A stretch of 64,000 bases of DNA from Phaeosaccion multiseriatum. Taxonomy: Eukaryota > Protista > Ochrophyta, other classes. The DNA is taken from the NCBI GenBank assembly GCA_965112735.1, contig OZ218953.1, forward strand, positions 5,582,048 through 5,646,047, written 5' to 3'. The notes beneath the pieces are model-generated. The model ran no database searches and was not told the origin of the DNA. It worked only from the letters and a program-made list of their open reading frames with translations. Positions 26,633-42,009 of this stretch are shown here, piece by piece (the stretch's first letter is position 1; each line of letters opens with the position of its first letter). Made by a program: the position numbers and the translations under genes.

Positions 26633-27984
26633 ATCCCCAGCTGCTGCTCCTGCCGTCGCCCGTAGGCATGGAGCTCACGCAGCGCCTGCGCAAAGATGGA
26701 GGCGAGGGCTCCATCCATAGCCGCTGCGCTGGACTCGCCTTGGGTGGGCAGCCTCATGTCTACAAGCCGCCACACAGAGCTCCGGATGGAGTCACCGTCA
26801 ACGTCACCGCTGCTGGAGCCAGAGCTACCGCCCACGCTGAGGGGGAAGGGTGAATATAGAGGGGCGGGGAGAGACGCGGTGCTGGTGAGGCGGAATCGTT
26901 AGTTTCGAATGGTGCTGTAGAATAGGTTGGGGTGGCAAAGGCAAAGCGCGAACCAAACGGAGAGCGGGTCGAGGTACTATCGCTTGTACCGCCCAAAGAA
27001 CGCAGAGCAGGGAGGGACGAAATACAACACAAAAAGTATCACGAAAGGACACCACCATTTTCGTACCTCGCGCCCTCACCGCAGAGAAGAAAAGGGTTCA
27101 CTGTGGGTGCGGCCATCCCGAGGGGCTCGCTGTTGAGGAGGCGGCGAAGGTGGAAGCGCAGGAGCGAGCTCAGGAAGCCCGCAAGGCGCGAGCGGAGGGG
27201 CGACTCCAGCGCCGCCACTCTACTCCACCCCGCCACGCCGCCCGACATGGACTGAGACGAGTCAGGGGAGGAGAATGAGGAGGGGGGCCTGCACGAGTAC
27301 ACACAGCAGAGCTCTCGAAGATAACAGGCCGCCGCTGAAGTCACGTGCGTCTCGGACACCTCCGAGCCCATCTGCCGCGCAGCCTCTACCACCACTCCGG
27401 CCAAGCTGAGCCCCGTCCCTGCTACTGCTGTATCACCAACTCCTGCGTCTTGTACGGTGTGAGTCGGTGGAGCGGCGGCTGCTACTACCGAGGATGACGA
27501 GTCTGTTGATGACTTAGCGACCATCACAGCTATGGAGGGGCTCTGCTCGCTCCTGCTCGCGCTGCTCTCGCTCTTAAGCGCACTCCTGCGCGTACCCGTC
27601 GCTGCCCCTCTGCCGCTGCGGGCAATGGTCTTCAGAGCTCGCATGAACGTCAGCAGCGCGTCCTCCCCCCCCTCCCCTCCTGCAAAGTGTCCAGCACGAC
27701 TGCTGACGGCCCTGCCCTTAACAATATCCTCCTGCTCAATGACCCTCGACAGCAACTCTGCGCACCGCTCGGAGGTTCGCCGCGAGGCCGGCCTGGAGTC
27801 GACAGGAAGCGCCACCGCCGACAAGTCAAAGCTACAGAAGCGCACCTTGCCCAGGGGGGGGGCGCTACTCTCCGCTCGAAGGCTCTCCACCGCGGCGGCC
27901 TCCGCTGCCATCATGGCCTGGAGCATCGGGAGCAGGGTCACCACCCCCGTCTGCTCCTGTTGCCCTTGCTGCTGTATCACCAAC

Positions 27985-28020
<36 letters not shown>

Positions 28021-28171
28021 TGCTGGACGAGAGCCAGGGCGGAGGCGAAGACCGCTGGCAGCACGGCTCCGGCAGTATGGCGATATTTGAGGCGGGCGGC
28101 CTGCTCCATGATTTGCTGCCCCGAAGGGACTACAGGCAAGGGAGGGCGCGACCAAGAGGAAGCGCCTTGTC

Positions 28172-28210
<39 letters not shown>

Positions 28211-28825
28211 CTCCCACGCCTCTGTGGCCATAAGCCGTCCGCAGCACTTGTAACTCGCGCTCTACACGCAGAGCCTCGGGCTCCATGGGCTCAGCCTCGA
28301 GCAGGGGGGGATTGGCTGCAGAGGCGGACGTGTCCGGCCCGGCTTTTGTCTGTCCTACCAAAAGCCCTCCTGGGGTCTTTCCTTGCTCTGCCCAAAGAAC
28401 GCTCGAGCAAGAGTCCTGCGTGCCGCCCATCGACTCCACAACAGGGACTTGGCTGGCATCTGTACCACTGCTGATGCCGCTGATGCCGCTGATACTGCTG
28501 GTGCCGCTGGTGCTGCTGGTGACCGGCAAAGGGGCGGCAACTGCGAGGGCCTTCTCGTCAAGCTTCCGCCGCCTCCGTCCGGCAGCGTCTTGCGCTGCGA
28601 GGGCGCGTAAGTTGGTGCTGCTGCTGTTAGTGCCCTTACCACCACCCCCTTGCACAGCCCGAGCCGCAGCCTTGCGCTTAATGGGCAGGGGAGACGGCAG
28701 GCAAGGCCAACCGGAGGTGTGTGAATGTGTGAGGGCAGAGGCCACCGGGGCGGAGGATGGCACGCACTTTCGCTTCTTGACCACCTTCCCCCGCTCCTCG
28801 GGGATGGGCACGAGGCCTGGATGTC

Positions 28826-28866
<41 letters not shown>

Positions 28867-29815
28867 ATCACCAATTGCCCCCTCTGAGCACCCCCGGAGG
28901 CGCCTCCTTTCCCTCCCTGGCCCTGACGAGCTGCAGCTGCTGGCTTCGACCCACCTCTCCCCCCTGCCGCTGTTTTGGCGGTGGCCTTATTCGTCCTCCT
29001 CGCCCCCTGCGTCTCGTCAGTCGCCTTGTCAGCCTTCCTCACTTCTGCCACACCCCCTCCGGCGGTTTCAGCTGTTGCTCCGGGTACTGCGGAGGTCCCA
29101 TGCGCTGTCACCGCCTCCCCGTCTCTTGCTGCTCTACCTGCTCCTCCCTTCTGCGGAACATTCCGACTCCTCTTCACGCCCCGCTCCCGCTCCCCCCCCC
29201 CCTCCTCCTCCTCCTCCTCCGCCACGACTTGCTCGTTGTACACCACGCGGCCCCTCCGACTGATCCTCAAGCTCCGACGACGGAGGGATTGGTCCCTCTT
29301 CTGCACCTGCTCTGTCATCTTCAGAATCTGTGCCGAGATTGCCGCCGCCTCTCCCCCCCCCTCTCCCTCCCCGCCTCCCTCCCCTGCACTTTGTCCATCC
29401 TCTCCGCTGCCCCCCCCCCCCCCCTTGCCGCCCCTGCTACTACAACTACTTGTGCGGGCCTCACTTCCCCCCACCACCCCTGATTCTGCATCGCCTGCTT
29501 CTGCTTCGTCGTCATCATCCTTCAGGAAATCATCGTCAATCACGAGCATCCCCTCCCCTGCTCCTGCTGCTGTATCACCAACTGCTGCTGGTGCTCGTGC
29601 TGCTGGTGCTCCTGCTGCTGGTGCTCCTGCTGCTGGTGCTGCTGTGGTTGGGTCTCCCCCAGTTTTTGGGCTGTGATTCCACTCTCCAATCCTGCCGAGT
29701 CCGATTCCCAGCAACATGTCGTCGTTCTGCGGCATGCCGAAGTCGTCAGGCATGGCCACCTCGTCCAACTCAGAAACATCCATCAAGTCCTCCGCTGCCG
29801 ATATGTCTCCTCCTC

Positions 29816-29846
<31 letters not shown>

Positions 29847-31850
29847 ACCCTTTCCTCCTCCTTCGCTCCCCTCTTCTCCGTTCCTTGCCAGGGACAGCGC
29901 CTGCGTGTCAGCCTTTGCTTCCAACGCTGTTGCTGCTTCTGTTGCTGCCGCTGCGTGTACTGCTTTTGGTGCTGCTTTTGCTGCTTCCGTTGCTGCTGCG
30001 GCTGTTGCGACTACTGGCCTTTCTTCGTGTGTGCAATCTCCAGCACCTTCGCCATGCTTCTCTTCCGTCGCTGAGACGGGGGCTGCTGGGATGAGACTCC
30101 GAAGCAAGGCGTCTCCCTGCAGCTCCTGCCCCAGGTTTGCTGACGTAAAAAGCTCCTTCAGGCCGCGCGCTAACGTCTCTACCGCCGTCTCGCCCGTCTT
30201 CGTTCCTTCGTCCATCGCTGTAGCGGAGGTGGCGGTAGCCATACCTTTCCCCCGTTTGCTGCCTCTGCCTCTGCCTCTGCCTCTGCCTTGCTCTTGACCC
30301 TCGTCTTGCTCCTTGGTGGCGCAGCCCCCTGCCCCGCCCTCCCCTGCAATTGTGTGAGCGACGACGGCCCTCAATCCCTGCTGTAGCGCAACAAGCTTGT
30401 CCTGGACACATTTCACCTCCTCATTGGCCCTCGTTAAGGCAGCCTTGTCCTTCTTTCCCTTGGCCTTGAGAGCAGCTGCGCTTTCCTTGAATCGCCGCTG
30501 CGCCGCGTCACTCTGCTCTTTCAAACAATCTACTTGGGCGCTCAGCTCGCCGTTCTCGCGGGTAAGAGCAGCGGTTTTGAACCCTTGCTGCTCTTGTACT
30601 TGCTGCTGCCTCTCTGTCCCCTCCTCCCGCAGTCTGTGTGCTTCTTGCAGCGCTGTGGCCAAACCTGATGCCATGTCCCTGCCCTCAATCTCCATGGAGT
30701 CCACACGGGCCCTGAGGGCGGCATTCTCCTCTTGCAGACTAGTCTGCCGTCGAACGAGTTCCCTCCTCTCCGCCTCGGCCTCTCCAGCAACCGCAGCAAC
30801 CGCAGCTTTGGTCTTTGCCAGCCCCTGTTGCTCGTCTCGCTCTTTCTCCTCGCGAACAATCGCCGCCTCCCTGCCCAACCTCACGTTCTCCGACTCCAGC
30901 GTCTCGATCTTGCTCTGAAGCTTCTGCACCTCAACTTCCGTCTTTTTGGCCTGCTGTAAAGTTTCCTCCCTTTGAGCACAAGCCCCCTGTACCTCTCCCA
31001 CCAAAGCCTCAGCTGCCAGCTTGGCCGTCTTGGTCTCGTGTCTTGCGAGCGCCAGCTCGCTCTCCAAACCAGCCACACGCTCCTCCAAAGTCTTGATCTG
31101 TTGTATCGACGCCACCCACTTCGCCTGATGTTGCTGTTGCTCCTCCTCCTGTTGCTTCGCTTTCTGCAGCTCCTCCTGACGCTCTTGCTTTTCTTGACTG
31201 GGCTCTTCCTTATTCCGGGCGGCTTCTTTCTTCTCTTGCTGCTGCCGCTCCTCCGTGCAGCTACCGCCGCTCTCCGCCTTTCTTGGATGACCGTCATTGC
31301 CCCTATCTATCCTTCCGGCGTCTACCCCCCTAACTCCTGCTACCCCTACTACCCTATGGTGTTGTTGTCGTTGCTGTTGCTGCTGTTGCTGCTGTTGTTG
31401 TCTATATTTCTGCTTTTCCTGTTGCTTATGTTTCAAGTCTGCGAACAGTGAAGGCTGACCACAGCTGTTCGTGCCCCCGGCTGGGGATAGTGGCCCCGAA
31501 TCTTTCCCATCGGCACTGCTGCCACCACCGCCACCCCCATTCTTCCCGTCTTTCCTCGACGCGTGGAGAGAGGGGACAGAAAACTGCGCCAGCGCTTCGC
31601 CTACTCCAGACGTAAGAAGACCACTCGGTCGAGCCTTCCCCTTTCTCGGACTTCTTCGGAGCTGCTGTTGCTGTTGCTGACCTGCTGAGCATTCAGGGAA
31701 CTCCGTTCTCTGCTTGGTTGCCGCTACTTCTTCCCTATTAATATCCTTTACCCCCAGGGCCTTCTTGCCACTGCCTGCCCTGCCACTGCCTTCGCTGCCC
31801 ACGCCCCCCTCCGGAGCTGCTCCTGGTCCATCCGTGAAGATGAACGGCAT
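25434..31850 (-). CDS. Large low-complexity coiled-coil protein of unknown function
   Basis: A 1603-aa ORF (31850-~27060) with a heptad coiled coil (~aa 200-500) and polyQ/polyA/polyG tracts. Probable downstream exons lie at ~26835-26274, ~26146-26027 and ~25801-25434. Confidence 0.65.
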
Positions 31851-31931: not shown

Positions 31932-34900
31932 ATGGCACTGGATGGATGGCTTGCTCATGCGTTGGGCATACCATTGGACACCCCAAAAGGGATGAAGCGG
32001 GCCAAGGCGTCAGGAGAGGCCAAGGTGGTTGGTCCACCCCCTGTGCTACTGCTCTTCGCCGCGACGGCATTGCTACAAACGGTCCATGTCACGGCCTTCA
32101 GCCTTGTTCATTCTCCCCCTGCCTCTGGTCTGGCCCGGCGCAGCAGCAGCGGGAGCACGCGCAGGAGCAACAGATTGCGGGGTGAAGGGAGTGGGTGGGG
32201 TTCTCCTTCATCGTGTGGCTGTGGGAGAAAAAGTTGCGGCAAGAGAGGGGGCAGTCAGCAGCAGTACGGCTGGAGAGAGGAAGGTCTGCTGTTGAGGAAG
32301 TCAACTGCTCGTGATGGAGAAGAGGTGCAGGATGGCAGTCGGAAAAGGCGCAGAGGAGACTCCAGCAGCAGGAGAAGTCGGCTCGCTGACACGAGGCTGG
32401 CTGCGGCGAGCACTCCAACAGGCAGCGCGGGGGGGGGGGGTGACAAGGCGCGAGGCTTAACAAGGAGAGACTTGCTATCCTCTGCCGCCCTGGCCGCCAC
32501 TACGGGCACTGCCGCTGCAGCAGTGCTCACGGCTTTCCCTCAAGTATCCAAGGCAGCAGCGGCCGCAGCGCTAGGAGGATCCGGCTCCCCTGCCTCTGGA
32601 TCTTTCAATTACGTCCCTCCCGAGCTGGTGTGGACCCCCGTGAACGAGGCGGGGCAGGCAGCGGCCAGCGGGACGGGGACGTACAGCCCGCGCTTCACAG
32701 CCTACTTGGCCCGATTCCTCCTGAACTTCGACCCCCGCAGCATGTACTGGTGGGAGCAGCAGAAGAGAAAAGTACCCCGAGACAAGGCCGAGGCACTGGC
32801 CAGGGAGCTGATGGAAAATGGCTCCGACGCGGTCTTTCGAGCGCTCGATCTCAACAAAGACGGCGAGGTGGACAAGGAGGAGTTCTTCGTGTCGCTGAGC
32901 AATCAGAAGAGCGCCTTTAGTGGCTTCCAAGCCTCCGTGAGCTTTGGTAAGTGCAGGGTCCGAGGTGGGCGTAAGTGTTCGCGCCTCGGGCATGCCTCGT
33001 TTTGTTGTCTACACTGTTCGTCCTCCGCCCTCCTCGAGACTGCTTTTTGTCGGTGATGTCTTTTTATGCTCCTGAGAATGAATGCAAGTCGATTAGTCCA
33101 TCCCTCCCTCGATGAGTATCGTCCTCCTCTCCTGTTTCTCCTCTCCTCTTCTCTCCTCTCCTCTCCTCTCCTCCCCCCCCCCCTCCCGTCCCCTCCCCGC
33201 GCGTCTCACGCCAACTCACTCACTCACTCGCTCACTCAGGCCTGCGCAATTACCAAGGGAAGGACGGCACGCAACGCCTCTTCACCCTGCTCATGGACGA
33301 GTTCGGCCGCTCTCTGTCCAACAAGCGCCAGATCGCGCTGCTCTTCTCTCTGCTGGACTCCGAGCAGCCCACGCAGCTCATCAAGAAGCTCATCGCCGAG
33401 ACGGACAACTCCTCCGTGGAGTCGTACAAGTAGGTGCTACTGAGTGAGTGAGTGTGTTCTGGCTAGAGGGGCTAGGTGGTTATGTTTTGTGTGCTACTGA
33501 GTGAGTGAGTGTGGCACGTCAGCGAGAGGCGAGGGAGAGGCGAGGGGGGGAGGGACTTGTGTTCGTGCTGGAGCTCTGGGAGAGGAGAGGAACGAACAGC
33601 GAGGGGCTATGGCATATACCCATATACCCATAAACTAAGTAAAGTATCCTTGTCCCCACGTCCCCACTACCCTTCCCTCCCCGCCCCCCGCCCCCCCCCC
33701 ATCCACTGCCATCTCTCTCGTTTCTCTTAGGGTTGTGAATGGAGGCTCTGGCTATTCTCCCCGGAAGCCCCCTCTAGTGACTGTGGAGAAGCCTCTGTAC
33801 AAGGCGGATCAGGCCACCGCCAAGTGCACTCTCAAGCCCACGGGCCGCTTATTCCGCATCAAGGTAGGAACCACAGAGGGGGGCTTAAGTATGCTTAAGT
33901 ATGGCCGGTATAGTCTGTCCCCTTTCTGTTTTTCAAGGACGAGTGGGGAGCAGGCCAGCGCGAGCCGTTGTGTTGTGCCTTGGGGAGGGAGCAGATGACA
34001 GAATAAGTGAAGAGAGCACTTGGACCCTGGGCCGGCTCCGAGGGACGAGGACACCATCCAGGGTGACCACAGGGAGTACCACCAAAGTGCCACCAGATTG
34101 GTCGCTCCCCGCCCTCTCCCCCACCTCTTGCTCCTTTGGCATGATGTCACTTCGCTACCATCCTGGCCGTTTTCCCGATGCCGTCTTGGTCACTCTCTTC
34201 GCTGTATTTATGCACACCGTGCCGGGCGTCCCTGCACTTGCCAACACTTGCCTGGCCGCTGAGCATGCCTCTTCCTCTGTACCTCCTCTGTCTCTGTGTG
34301 CACCCCCCCCCCCCAGGTGCTCAGCGGCGGCAAGGGCTACACCAGCCCCCCCGAGGTGACTGTTTCCAGTCCGGCGTGGGGCAGAGGCGAGTCTGCCAAG
34401 GCCATCGCCACCATCAAGGGCGGGCAGGTGGCGGGCATTGTCCTGACCAATCAGGTGGGGAGGGGAGATACACAGTAGTTAGCAACCCTGTACATGTTTG
34501 GTCTTAGATCTCTTGTTCTCGTGTGTTCGTCTTGGTCCGCTCTCTGTCTGCTGATGCCCTTGCCCTGCCTTGCCTCGCTGCTGTGCTCTCTCCTTCAGGG
34601 AAAGGATTACAGCCCCGATGACCCGCTCATTGTCTCGATTGGGCTGCCCACCCCCAAGGACGCCAACGTGATTCAGGACCTTGAGTCGGTCATGGGCGGT
34701 GAGTTGTGCGTTGTGCGTTGGAGGGCACCACTGGGAGTCCGCTTGCTGGTGCTGCTGGTGCTGGTGCTGGTGCTGGTGCTGCTTCTTCTGCATTCCCAAA
34801 CTGCCTGTCTCCGAGGCTTTGGACGGTGGCGGATTTGTTTTGTTGGGCTCAAGTCTTTCCCCTTGGACTCATCGTTCCTTCCTCCGTGCCCCTCTTTGCC

Positions 34901-37742
34901 TCTCTCCCTCCCTCCCACCCGCCAAATCGATTGCCCACACCACACCAACACCTGTCACAGGCGCATCTGCAGAGGCTGTCTTAGAGTGGTGCGTGTCCTC
35001 CGTGGAGGTGGTCGACCCCGGCTCAGGCTATGCGCACTCCATCCCGCCCAAGGTCACTGTAGAACCCCCCCCGGACAGAAACGAGTTCGCCAACTTCGGC
35101 CAAGCCGCCAAAGTGGAGGCCGTACTGAGCGAGTCCCCGGGGGGCCTGATCCTGACGTCATGGCTGCCCACGCCCACCATGAACCAGGAGGTGACCACTC
35201 TGCTGCCATCCAACCTGGTGCCGTCGTACGACCCCTGCCTCGGCAAGTTTTACATCTCTCCGGTGCCCGTGCAGGACCCCAACTATTGCGTGTACTTTGC
35301 ACAGGACAACTTTGAGGTGTGTATGACCAACATGTGTGCGTGTGTTTGCTTGTGTACCGTCGTCTCGTGAAGAATGGCGAGCGAAAACTCGACTGTTGAA
35401 TGGTGGCCCCTCGCTCCGCCCTTTAGGCTCTCCCCTCTTTTCTACTGTCACTCATTCGCATTGGGGGGAAATACCCTTACTCCAAGCCGTGGACTTACGC
35501 ACCCGCACCCGCACACACGCACCCACCCACCCGCGTCCTCCTCCCGTCGTTGTGCTGCTGTATCACCAACTGCTGCTGCTGTTGCTGCTGCTGTGCGCAG
35601 GTGTACCCGTCTGAGAAGATGAGTCGCTACTTCAGCTTCCTGGACGGCCCTCGCGCCCGCTACCCCGTGGAGAAGGAGCGGCAGCTCGACCTCGGCGTGT
35701 TCCTACGCTTTGCGGCCTGCGGGGCGGTGTGCGGATCTGCGGCGCACGCGTTGCTCGTGCCCATCGACGTGGTGAAGACTCGGATGCAGAGCGAACCCGA
35801 GAAATACAAGGGCATGGTGGGGGCCTTTAAGACTATCGTCAAGGAGGAGGGGAAGGAGGCCTTTTTGCTCGGCGCGGTGAGTGAGGGAGGGAGTGAATGC
35901 GTTGTGTGGCGTCGCTCGTCGCTCGTTACCGTGTGTGTGTCCTCTTTCCTCTGTTCTCTGTTCTTTGGCCCTCCCTTCCGTATGTCCACCCTCCCCCCCT
36001 GATGCGATTCCCATCCCCTGATGCCATACCTCACCCCGGCCCTGTCGCTTGCCCCATCCCGCCTCCTGTGCCTGGCACACCTTTGCGCGCGCACACACAC
36101 ACACAGGGTGCAACGACAGTGGGGTACATGCTCTACGGAGGCTTCTCCTTCGGACTAACAGAGTTCTTTAAGCGGAAGTTCGTGGAGTTTGCAGGGCCCG
36201 GTCCTGCCGCCCTTTACCCTGTGCCCATCCTGCTGCTTGCGAGTGCCTGTGCCGCCACCTTCGCAGCCACCGCGGTGACCCCCTTCGAGGCCATTCGCAT
36301 CCGCACAGTGACTGTGAAGGACTACCCCAAGTCGCTGGTCGGGGCTCTCAAGCACGTGAGTAGAGGGAGGAGGGAGTAGAAGGAGCAAAGGGCGGAGGGT
36401 GGGGGGCGTGTGAAGGGATGAGGAGCGTTTATGGCAGAGAGCGCCAGGAGGGAGACAGGGATCTAGCCCTAAGCGTGAGGAGGGAGAGAGGGCCCTAACC
36501 TAAGCGTGAGGAGGGAGAGAGGGCCCTAACGTAAGCGTGAGGAGGGAGAGAGGGCCCTAACCTAAGCGTGAGGAGGGAGAGAGGGCCCTAACCTAAGCGT
36601 GAGGAGGGAGAGAGGGCCTTCGCTCATTGGCAGGAGTGTGCTCGAGCTCGCGACGCTTTGCCACTCCAATTCGTTGGATCCCTTCTAATCGCTCCCTCCC
36701 CCCCCCCCCGCCTCTGTTTGTCCCTCAGACGCTCGAGACCGGCGAAGTGGGAGATCTTTTCTACGGCGTACCCGTGCTGCTCCTCGCGGAGATTCCCTTC
36801 ATGATGACCAAATTCGCGGTGTTTGACTTCACCTCCAAGCTTACGTACTCGCTCTTCCCCGTGGCCGCCGACTCTGTGACGCTGTCCCTGCTCGTGTCGT
36901 TGGTGAGCGGCATGATCGCCGGAGTGATGGCGAGTCTCGTGTCGCAGCCCTCGGACACCATCATGACGGAGGTCAGCGAGGGCGGGCATGAGGCGGGGGA
37001 AGCGGAGGGAGGGGAGGCAGGGGCTGGGGCAGGCAGGGGGGAGTACGAGGAGTCGGGCATCGAGAGCTCTTTGGTAGCAGCGGCAGAGTCCAAGGTTGCA
37101 GCCCTCGCACTCGCCGCCACAGAGGCGGAGGGGGGAGGAGGCGGGGAGGAGGGAGGATTGCTCGCAGAAGCGGCTGCCGAGGCGGAGGCGGCGGTGGCGG
37201 CGCTGGCACTCGCGGCCAAGGGAGGCGCGGAGGAAGAGCTGCAGCCCGGCCTGGCCCTCGCAGCCGTCAAAGGCGTGGAGGAAGCGGCATCTGTGGGGCA
37301 GAACGGTCTCGTCGATGAGGAGGGGGGGCTGACAGCAGCAGCGGCACCAGCAGCAGCAGCACCAGCAGCAGCAGCAGCGTCAGCAGCATCAGCAGCAGCG
37401 GCGGCGGGAGATGCGACAAGCTCTCTTTCCGCACCCGAGGCCCCTCCCGTACCGCAGGAGTTGCACAAGCCCGGCGGTGTGAACATTCCCGAGGTGGCGG
37501 CTCGGCTCATCAGGGAGGGTGGAGGTCCCTTAGCGCTCTACAGCGGAGCCCTCCCGCGGTCCATCAAGAGCGCCGTGAACATCGCGGTGCAGTTCTTCCT
37601 GTACGACTTCTGCAAGCGTGTGGCCATGGTGTCCCCGGACGACATCAAGGTGTTCTTTGACGTCATGTCCGGCCTTGAGGTGAATGATCCGGGCCTCGCA
37701 TCCAAAATCATCTCGGGGGCCGCCAATATCCCCACCCCGTGA
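31932..37742 (+). CDS. Mitochondrial-carrier-family (SLC25, phosphate-carrier-like) protein with plastid + Tat presequence, EF-hand and G.GY beta-repeat N-terminal domain
   Basis: Approximate exons: 31932(or 31992)-32947, 33239-33429, 33731-33863, 34317-34454, 34599-34698, 34960-35316, 35601-35876, 36107-36355, 36729-37742. Three carrier signature motifs (VPIDVVKTRMQ, TPFEAIRIR, SQPSDTIMT) plus PiC-like helices GATTVGYMLYGGFSFGLTEFFKR and IPFMMTKFAVFD. EF-hand DLNKDGEVDKEEF. Confidence 0.85.
36467..36620 (+). repeat. Intronic 31-bp minisatellite (~5 copies)
   Basis: Unit CCCTAACCTAAGCGTGAGGAGGGAGAGAGGG. Confidence 0.9.

Positions 37743-38475: not shown

Positions 38476-42009
<3,534 letters not shown>

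Follow-up and report, generated by a model that had tools for sequence, protein, structure and literature searches.

A predicted plastid-targeted SLC25 carrier with a twin-arginine-type signal and a large amino-terminal domain in the ochrophyte Phaeosaccion multiseriatum

The window analysed here is a stretch of 64,000 nucleotides (nt) from Phaeosaccion multiseriatum (assembly GCA_965112735.1, contig OZ218953.1, positions 5,582,048 to 5,646,047 of the forward strand), and all positions below are counted from its first letter. Its plus strand carries, between 31932 and 37742, a gene of 9 exons whose product comprises 1156 amino acids (aa) with zero internal stops, as established from six-frame open reading frames (ORFs), frame-wise translation and reading of the exon boundaries. 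The protein contains, in this order, a signal peptide, a Ser/Arg-rich stretch, a GLTRRDLL signal of the twin-arginine translocation (Tat) type, a helical region, GxGY repeats, a Cys/Pro/Tyr block and three Mito_carr repeats of the SLC25 carrier family. On balance, these features favour a membrane transporter that is targeted to the plastid, belongs to an undescribed family and is probably seated in the thylakoid membrane with its amino-terminal domain in the lumen. The parts are of kinds already known (SLC25 carrier, Tat signal, EF-hand); their combination and the amino-terminal domain are new.

The core of the gene model is the continuity between its two halves. The 8 introns are all of the GT-AG type, measure 144-453 nt, have pyrimidine-rich 3' ends and are consistent in phase. 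In pairwise alignments of the spliced model with its homologues 8 of 8 exon junctions were crossed without gaps, that of exon 1 (donor G/GTAAGT at 32947) included, at identities of 56% to Chrysoparadoxa australica (714 columns), 49% to Tribonema minus, 50% to one further relative and 34% to a eustigmatophyte. At the exon 6/7 junction the residues on the two sides are ...NYCVYFAQDNFE and VYPSEKMSRYFS..., which stand opposite ...NYCIYFEASEFR and VLPSEKLIPYFS... of the homologue. Three relatives contain the amino-terminal domain and the carrier in one uninterrupted ORF (L001, 977 aa; L003, 818 aa; L004, 1173 aa), and Mito_carr was present in 9 of 9 scanned hits of at least 700 aa from the search with the amino-terminal domain (exon 1). 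Given gap-free junctions here and uninterrupted fusion ORFs in relatives, a reading with two genes is very unlikely; judged from these alignments the amino-terminal half and the carrier are a single gene and the fusion is real, which bears out the sequence-only reading of this DNA, where both had been taken as one protein.

The family to which this protein belongs was delimited with the exon 1 segment aa 170-338, which retrieved 75 proteins in a full-library search; a word search with the same segment gave no match, a result explained by its length window. Members were identified in eustigmatophytes, xanthophytes, Chrysoparadoxa, brown algae and diatoms and in many sequences from algal assemblies and metagenomes. 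Those with names are Nannochloropsis oceanica VYU27_001867, Tribonema minus JKP88DRAFT_194574 and Chrysoparadoxa australica CAM9800459.1, together with proteins of Ascophyllum, two Ectocarpus species, Undaria and Heterococcus and a Nitzschia transcriptome protein. All the organisms named are plastid-bearing algae, and many algae whose plastids are of red origin have the same fusion. Annotation is hypothetical or unnamed throughout, the Tribonema minus member appearing in UniRef as 'EF-hand domain-containing protein', and a literature search found no paper describing the family.

The targeting region occupies the first half of exon 1. An endoplasmic reticulum (ER)-type signal peptide followed by Phe after the cleavage site and then by a transit region is the hallmark of ochrophyte plastid import, and in plastids the Tat translocase is found only in the thylakoid membrane, where it moves folded domains. 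The protein presents an ER-type signal peptide that starts at the second Met (MKRAK...), with the core PPPVLLLFAATALLQTV, a hydrophobic region at aa 30-55, a hydropathy maximum of 2.42 at aa 37 and, by inspection, a predicted cleavage at VTA/F between aa 55 and 56, so placed that Phe is at +1. The Ser/Arg-rich, transit-peptide-like stretch extends from aa 56 to about aa 174. The Tat-like signal contains GLTRRDLLSSAALAATTGTAAAAVLTAFPQVSKAAAAAA and is formed by G-L-T-R-R-D-L-L, an uncharged core of 26 residues (mean Kyte-Doolittle hydropathy 1.44 over the first 18) and an Ala run with AxA sites; the motif T-R-R-D-L-L-S (aa 177-183) fits an S/T-R-R-x-F-L-K-like pattern at the n/h border. A loose form of this pattern has only 2 occurrences elsewhere in the 61,524 six-frame stop-free residues of the Ala-rich window. 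The sequence-only reading had described a signal peptide ending VHVTA/FSL, a Ser/Arg-rich transit region and a Tat motif with Arg pair, core and AxA site; all three are present, the Arg pair lying one base before the 32464-32469 given there.

The same layout was identified across distant algal lineages. Complete gene models of the family begin with a strongly hydrophobic ER-type signal peptide, and the residue after its predicted cleavage site is Phe in eustigmatophytes (AxA/F, Nannochloropsis-type) and often also in other members. Arg-Arg in the context S/T/G/D-R-R-x-hydrophobic was found in 24 of 28 distinct amino termini, in each case 47-81 residues upstream of the mature-domain core YxPRFxxYLxRFLLN. 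It reads TRRDQL in eustigmatophytes, SRRSFL or SRRLFL in diatom-type sequences, SRRQFV in Tribonema and DRRTIL, GRRAAL or SRRTAL in further algal clades. Between 16 and 35 uncharged residues follow the pair in the homologues (mean Kyte-Doolittle 1.1-2.1 over the first 18 core residues), and the family alignment has the consensus RRxxLxxxA...PxxAxA. Since the Arg pair is conserved among homologues and its pattern is rare in the window, the tripartite layout is, as far as sequence comparison can tell, a conserved and not a chance feature. The expected conservation of signal and carrier together among ochrophyte relatives is thereby supported, the order of signal peptide, Arg pair, core and AxA site recurring in distant lineages.

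The soluble part after the signal comprises about 430-450 aa, a helical domain followed by GxGY...P.V beta repeats. The helical region carries the YSPRFTAYLARFLLNFD...WW block and a single canonical EF-hand loop, DLNKDGEVDKEE (Pfam EF-hand_5, 26.7 bits, cut-off 25.9); a second conserved helical block is located in exon 2. The beta repeats number three to four, about one per exon. Pfam gave no match on exons 3-6, and PHROG gave weak matches of the GxGY repeats to phage virion structural proteins (E 4e-4 to 0.1). AlphaFold models, built on 28-sequence alignments, were confident, with a predicted local distance difference test score (pLDDT) of 79 for the near-complete, amino-terminally partial Chrysoparadoxa homologue and of 82.6 for its amino-terminal domain alone (predicted template modelling score 0.72); they contain about 9 helices and then a beta-rich repeat domain. 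Foldseek with this domain against the PDB gave no match at E<=0.001, and the best VIA-align match was the insertion domain of the T4 tail-sheath protein gp18, with a Z of 5.2 over 75 residues that is below the tool's noise guidance. Its neighbours by shape in the ESM Atlas were mostly phage structural proteins (template modelling score, TM, <=0.33), the Atlas search by features gave no match, and in the own-model search against the Atlas the helical part loosely resembled EF-hand proteins (TM 0.3-0.4). As modelled, the domain is a new module without a solved structural relative in the PDB fold searches. The soluble EF-hand domain of some 500 aa that had been proposed is thus present with one loop, shorter than stated and with the beta repeats added.

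The SLC25 carrier is encoded by exons 7-9 and is formed by three tandem Mito_carr repeats (PF00153), three stretches of which were also identified in the homologues. The signature PX[DE]XX[KR]X[KR] of the odd helices is intact in the first two repeats (PIDVVKTR and PFEAIRIR) and degenerate in the third (PSDTIMTE), as in phosphate carriers. For homologue P0002, 56% identical to the window protein, AlphaFold gave a six-helix barrel that matches UCP1 (TM 0.74 by target) and the ADP/ATP carriers; sequence and fold searches of the PDB with the carrier returned generic SLC25 structures only. The closest named relatives of the family carrier are mitochondrial phosphate carriers (SLC25A3, MIR1 and the Cu/Pi carrier, 31-38% identity), in agreement with the six-helix, phosphate-carrier-like domain expected from the sequence alone. 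Maximum-likelihood phylogeny placed 68 canonical phosphate carriers, those of other algae among them, on one side of a branch with 99/87 support and all family members outside (the row P0185 from Heterococcus, labelled canonical, is a family fragment). The window protein branches beside the group of Chrysoparadoxa, xanthophytes and brown algae. By this phylogeny the family carrier is a sister or related subfamily of the phosphate carriers and not their orthologue. Of 93 columns at least 90% conserved in canonical phosphate carriers the window protein retains 59, among which are the helix-1 His and signatures one and two.

Carrier repeat 3 of the window protein contains an in-frame Ala/Glu/Gly-rich insert of 166 aa in a matrix-side loop, not found in the homologues. 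The codon periodicity of the insert is strong (71% G at position 1), which suggests that it is translated; an intron hidden in it was judged unlikely from this periodicity and from the want of a strong splice donor. In the eustigmatophyte protein P0003 the loop of carrier repeat 2 holds an acidic insert of unrelated sequence, and the matrix-side loops of the carrier seem to tolerate large insertions.

Table 1. Positions of the exons, signals and domains of the gene and of neighbouring features in the window.
Feature	Position	Strand	Residues	Content and basis
Exon 1	31932..32946	+	1-338	Start codon, signal peptide, Ser/Arg-rich transit-like region, Tat-like signal, beginning of helical domain with EF-loop; ORF and frame analysis
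Exon 2	33240..33429	+	339-401	Conserved helical block GLxxYQGKDG...RQIALLFSL..QP..IKKLIAETDN
Exon 3	33731..33863	+	402-446	GxGY beta repeat 1; weak PHROG matches to phage structural repeats
Exon 4	34317..34454	+	447-492	GxGY beta repeat 2
Exon 5	34599..34698	+	493-525	Degenerate repeat (GKDY)
Exon 6	34961..35316	+	526-644	GxGY repeat 3, then conserved block SWLP...LLPxNLVPxYDPCL...DPNYC adjoining the carrier
Exon 7	35601..35876	+	645-736	Linker YFSFLDGPRARYPVEKE, carrier repeat 1 (PIDVVKTRMQ); Pfam Mito_carr 4.2e-13
Exon 8	36107..36355	+	737-819	Carrier helix 2, repeat 2 (PFEAIRIRTV); Pfam Mito_carr 6.2e-06
Exon 9	36729..37742	+	820-1156 and stop	Carrier helix 4, repeat 3 (SQPSDTIMTEV), conserved C-terminal tail; Pfam Mito_carr 5e-12
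Signal peptide	31992..32096	+		ER-type, from second Met
Cleavage site	32094-32096/32097	+	55/56	VTA/F
Transit-like stretch	32097..32453	+	56 to ~174	Ser/Arg-rich
Tat-like signal	32454..32570	+		Arg pair, uncharged core, Ala run
Twin arginine	32463-32468	+	178-179	Arg-Arg
EF-hand loop	32847-32882	+	306-317	Canonical, single
GxGY repeats	33731-35130	+		Exons 3-6
Insert in carrier repeat 3	36978..37475	+		166 aa, in frame
Trinucleotide run, intron 6	35562-35597			CTG/GCT, directly 5' of exon 7 acceptor
Tandem repeat, intron 8	36465-36600			~4-5 copies of ~32-nt unit
Low-complexity ORF	27039-31850	-		1603 aa, poly-Q/Gly/Ala tracts
Ferredoxin-NADP reductase-like gene	38476-39027	-		C-terminal exon, ends ...GQWHVEVY

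A thylakoid transporter with a lumenal domain would be assembled as follows. The signal peptide and the transit region would take the precursor through the four plastid envelope membranes, and the Arg-Arg segment would then engage the thylakoid Tat translocase. The folded amino-terminal domain would be moved to the lumen and the signal cut at an Ala-x-Ala site, after which carrier helix 1 would halt the transfer and the other helices would integrate into the thylakoid membrane. Bacterial Tat is described as integrating proteins in which a large exported domain is combined with a helix at the C-terminus (PMC10924467). As both termini of SLC25 carriers are on the cytoplasmic face, a lumenal amino-terminal domain would place that face toward the acidic lumen, and the matrix face, with its low-complexity loop insert, would look toward the stroma. 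The orientation relative to the proton gradient would be as in mitochondria, and the most likely activity would be to move phosphate, or a small anion like it, out of the lumen into the stroma in a manner linked to that gradient. The lumenal domain may act as a regulatory or docking module, and it would bind Ca2+ only in that subclade whose members have the EF-loop.

Several observations weigh against this reading. The transit-like stretch is unusually long (~120 aa) and contains some acidic residues. Four brown-algal sequences (P0093, P0094, P0097 and P0098) read SR[AE][SA]FV, with a single Arg, although hydrophobic core and AxA site are both retained; homologues lacking the Arg pair had been named beforehand as evidence against a Tat route, and in the brown algae this is what was found. 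Their single Arg could mean that the Tat motif has been relaxed in this lineage or that the protein has changed to another pathway. The canonical EF-loop is kept only in the window protein and in the sequences of brown algae, xanthophytes, Chrysoparadoxa and eustigmatophytes and is missing as an indel of ~38 residues in diatom-type and other members. Ca2+ sensing, suggested earlier as a possible function of the domain, therefore cannot be the core function of the family; from its loop sequence, Ca2+ binding by the window protein is plausible, but it is not family-wide. In the carrier 34 of the 93 phosphate-carrier columns are changed, with Q and K of helix 2 replaced by Y746 and S750, E and D of helix 3 by A786 and A790, and K and Q of helix 4 by A839 and E840. 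The helix-3 Glu presumably corresponds to a residue implicated in proton coupling of yeast Mir1, and coupling of phosphate to H+ may have been lost in this carrier. With invariant polar and charged residues replaced, the domain is called phosphate-carrier-like and phosphate is uncertain as its substrate. Finally, the membrane proteins known to be integrated by Tat have one helix, and no six-helix Tat substrate is known.

The last point and the single Arg of the brown-algal orthologues with their hydrophobic core also speak for a plastid protein that makes no use of Tat, its Arg-Arg segment being a thylakoid signal of the Sec or signal recognition particle type or an uncleaved anchor, or the protein being an inner-envelope carrier whose amino-terminal domain lies in either stroma or intermembrane space. 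MCFc, an SLC25 carrier characterised from diatom plastids and a different, ADP/ATP-carrier-like protein, sits in the envelope (PMC12645085). However, Sec signals do not need an Arg pair, while here the pair recurs in very divergent lineages as S/T-R-R-x-hydrophobic-hydrophobic with a weakly hydrophobic core and AxA, and the large domain, well folded in its model, is the kind of cargo suited to Tat. A reading of this kind is less likely than the Tat reading, though far from negligible.

A carrier of the mitochondrial inner membrane, with its amino-terminal domain toward the intermembrane space and the Arg pair used by a remnant of mitochondrial Tat or without function, is improbable. It would agree with the mitochondrial phosphate carriers as closest named relatives and with the Ca2+-regulated ATP-Mg/Pi and aspartate/glutamate carriers, which have amino-terminal EF-hand domains toward the intermembrane space. 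The ER-type signal peptide followed by Phe, here and in the homologues, is nevertheless that of the ochrophyte plastid route, the tree separates the family from the canonical phosphate carriers, algal ones included, and its named organisms all have plastids.

An artefact of the gene model, in which a soluble protein with the Arg-Arg signal (exons 1-6) would lie next to an independent gene for the carrier, with Met 652 of ...EKMSRYF (35619) as its start, is highly improbable: although the public reads of this organism are only genomic, although an in-frame ATG is close to the start of exon 7 and although certain public gene models divide the family into two proteins (P0001 with P0110; P0102, P0103), the exon 6/7 junction is of the GT-AG type in phase 0/0 (GAG/GTGTGT...GCGCAG/GTG) with an intron of usual length (284 nt, like the remaining ones), three relatives have the continuous ORF, and the exon 7 Met is not conserved (L, L and F in homologues), the alignment that runs straight through the junction arguing against a carrier gene starting there. 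The stretch is contained in the public reads of 4 runs from one study, whose contigs are genomic with introns, zero sequence differences and zero spliced joints; apparent joints had sides of 20-21 letters at low-complexity tracts and were taken as repeat artefacts.

Comparison with known systems sets the putative thylakoid carrier apart from each of them. With SLC25A3, Mir1 and Pic2 it shares the three-repeat six-helix fold, the motifs PxDVVKTRxQ, GY..G..FG..E..K, PFEAxRIR and IPF/YxMxKF and the degenerate third signature S.P.DT. It differs from them in forming a separate clade, in the changed columns (the helix 3 acidics and helix 4 Lys/Gln included), and in having an amino-terminal extension of ~650 aa that bears signals of plastid and Tat type, a C-terminal tail that is conserved, and large loop inserts. 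TAAC/PAPST1 of green plants is an SLC25 carrier working in the thylakoid membrane, so that the fold can function there (PMC5948301), whereas TAAC is ADP/ATP-carrier-like and without a large amino-terminal domain or Arg-Arg signal; the family carrier has phosphate carriers, not nucleotide carriers, as its closest named relatives. PHT4;1 of Arabidopsis (SLC17 type), which moves phosphate across the thylakoid membrane, is a possible functional counterpart of unrelated fold, PHT4 homologues being reported only in green and red algae (PMC5948301). For brown algae and diatoms, homologues of both TAAC and PHT4 are reported to be lacking (PMC5948301).

The Ca2+-regulated carriers APC/SCaMC and AGC/Aralar also have a soluble amino-terminal EF-hand domain fused to an SLC25 carrier on the cytoplasmic face, but theirs contains 4-8 EF-hands and no beta-repeat domain, whereas here there is one loop, in one subclade, with a different carrier subfamily. 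Tat membrane proteins such as Rieske and the bacterial tail-anchored hydrogenase and formate dehydrogenase subunits likewise combine a twin-arginine signal, a folded exported domain and then a membrane segment (PMC10924467); theirs is a single helix, in contrast to the six carrier helices that follow the exported domain here. Phage virion proteins with GSGY-type repeats (T4 gp18 insertion domain) resemble the GxGY...P.V repeats in weak PHROG and structural scores, which are too low to show homology, and here the repeats belong to a membrane protein of a eukaryotic organelle.

Further observations concern the gene boundaries and the surroundings. There are two candidate start Met, at aa 1 and aa 21, the second giving a more typical signal peptide than the first. 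The first ATG of the minus-strand low-complexity ORF is 82 nt from that of the gene, which implies either a very short divergent promoter region common to both genes or one wrong start codon. In intron 8 the unit of the tandem repeat is cctaagcgtgaggagggagagagggccctaac, and short-read contigs break there; at the trinucleotide run of intron 6 the contigs of 4 of the 4 runs end. The ferredoxin-NADP reductase-like gene is immediately downstream and convergent.

How solutes cross the thylakoid membranes of diatoms, kelps and related algae is nearly uncharted, and the nucleotide and phosphate thylakoid transporters of plants are reported missing there (PMC5948301). With its conservation, its apparent single copy and an address label of the lumen type, the carrier is a concrete candidate for thylakoid transport in these algae, and its amino-terminal domain, without a solved structural relative, is a new module for study. 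If the twin-arginine route is true, the protein would be unusual as a polytopic membrane protein handled by Tat and would extend what is known of Tat insertion. Tentatively, the sequence features may even point to the first protein of the mitochondrial-carrier fold routed by a twin-arginine signal, with a folded domain of ~430 aa exported to the lumen and a six-helix carrier remaining in the membrane; the family, conserved across algae with plastids of red origin, could supply the anion route lacking in lineages without TAAC and PHT4. A role in moving phosphate or small anions from lumen to stroma, without a known carrier in these algae, would then be filled.

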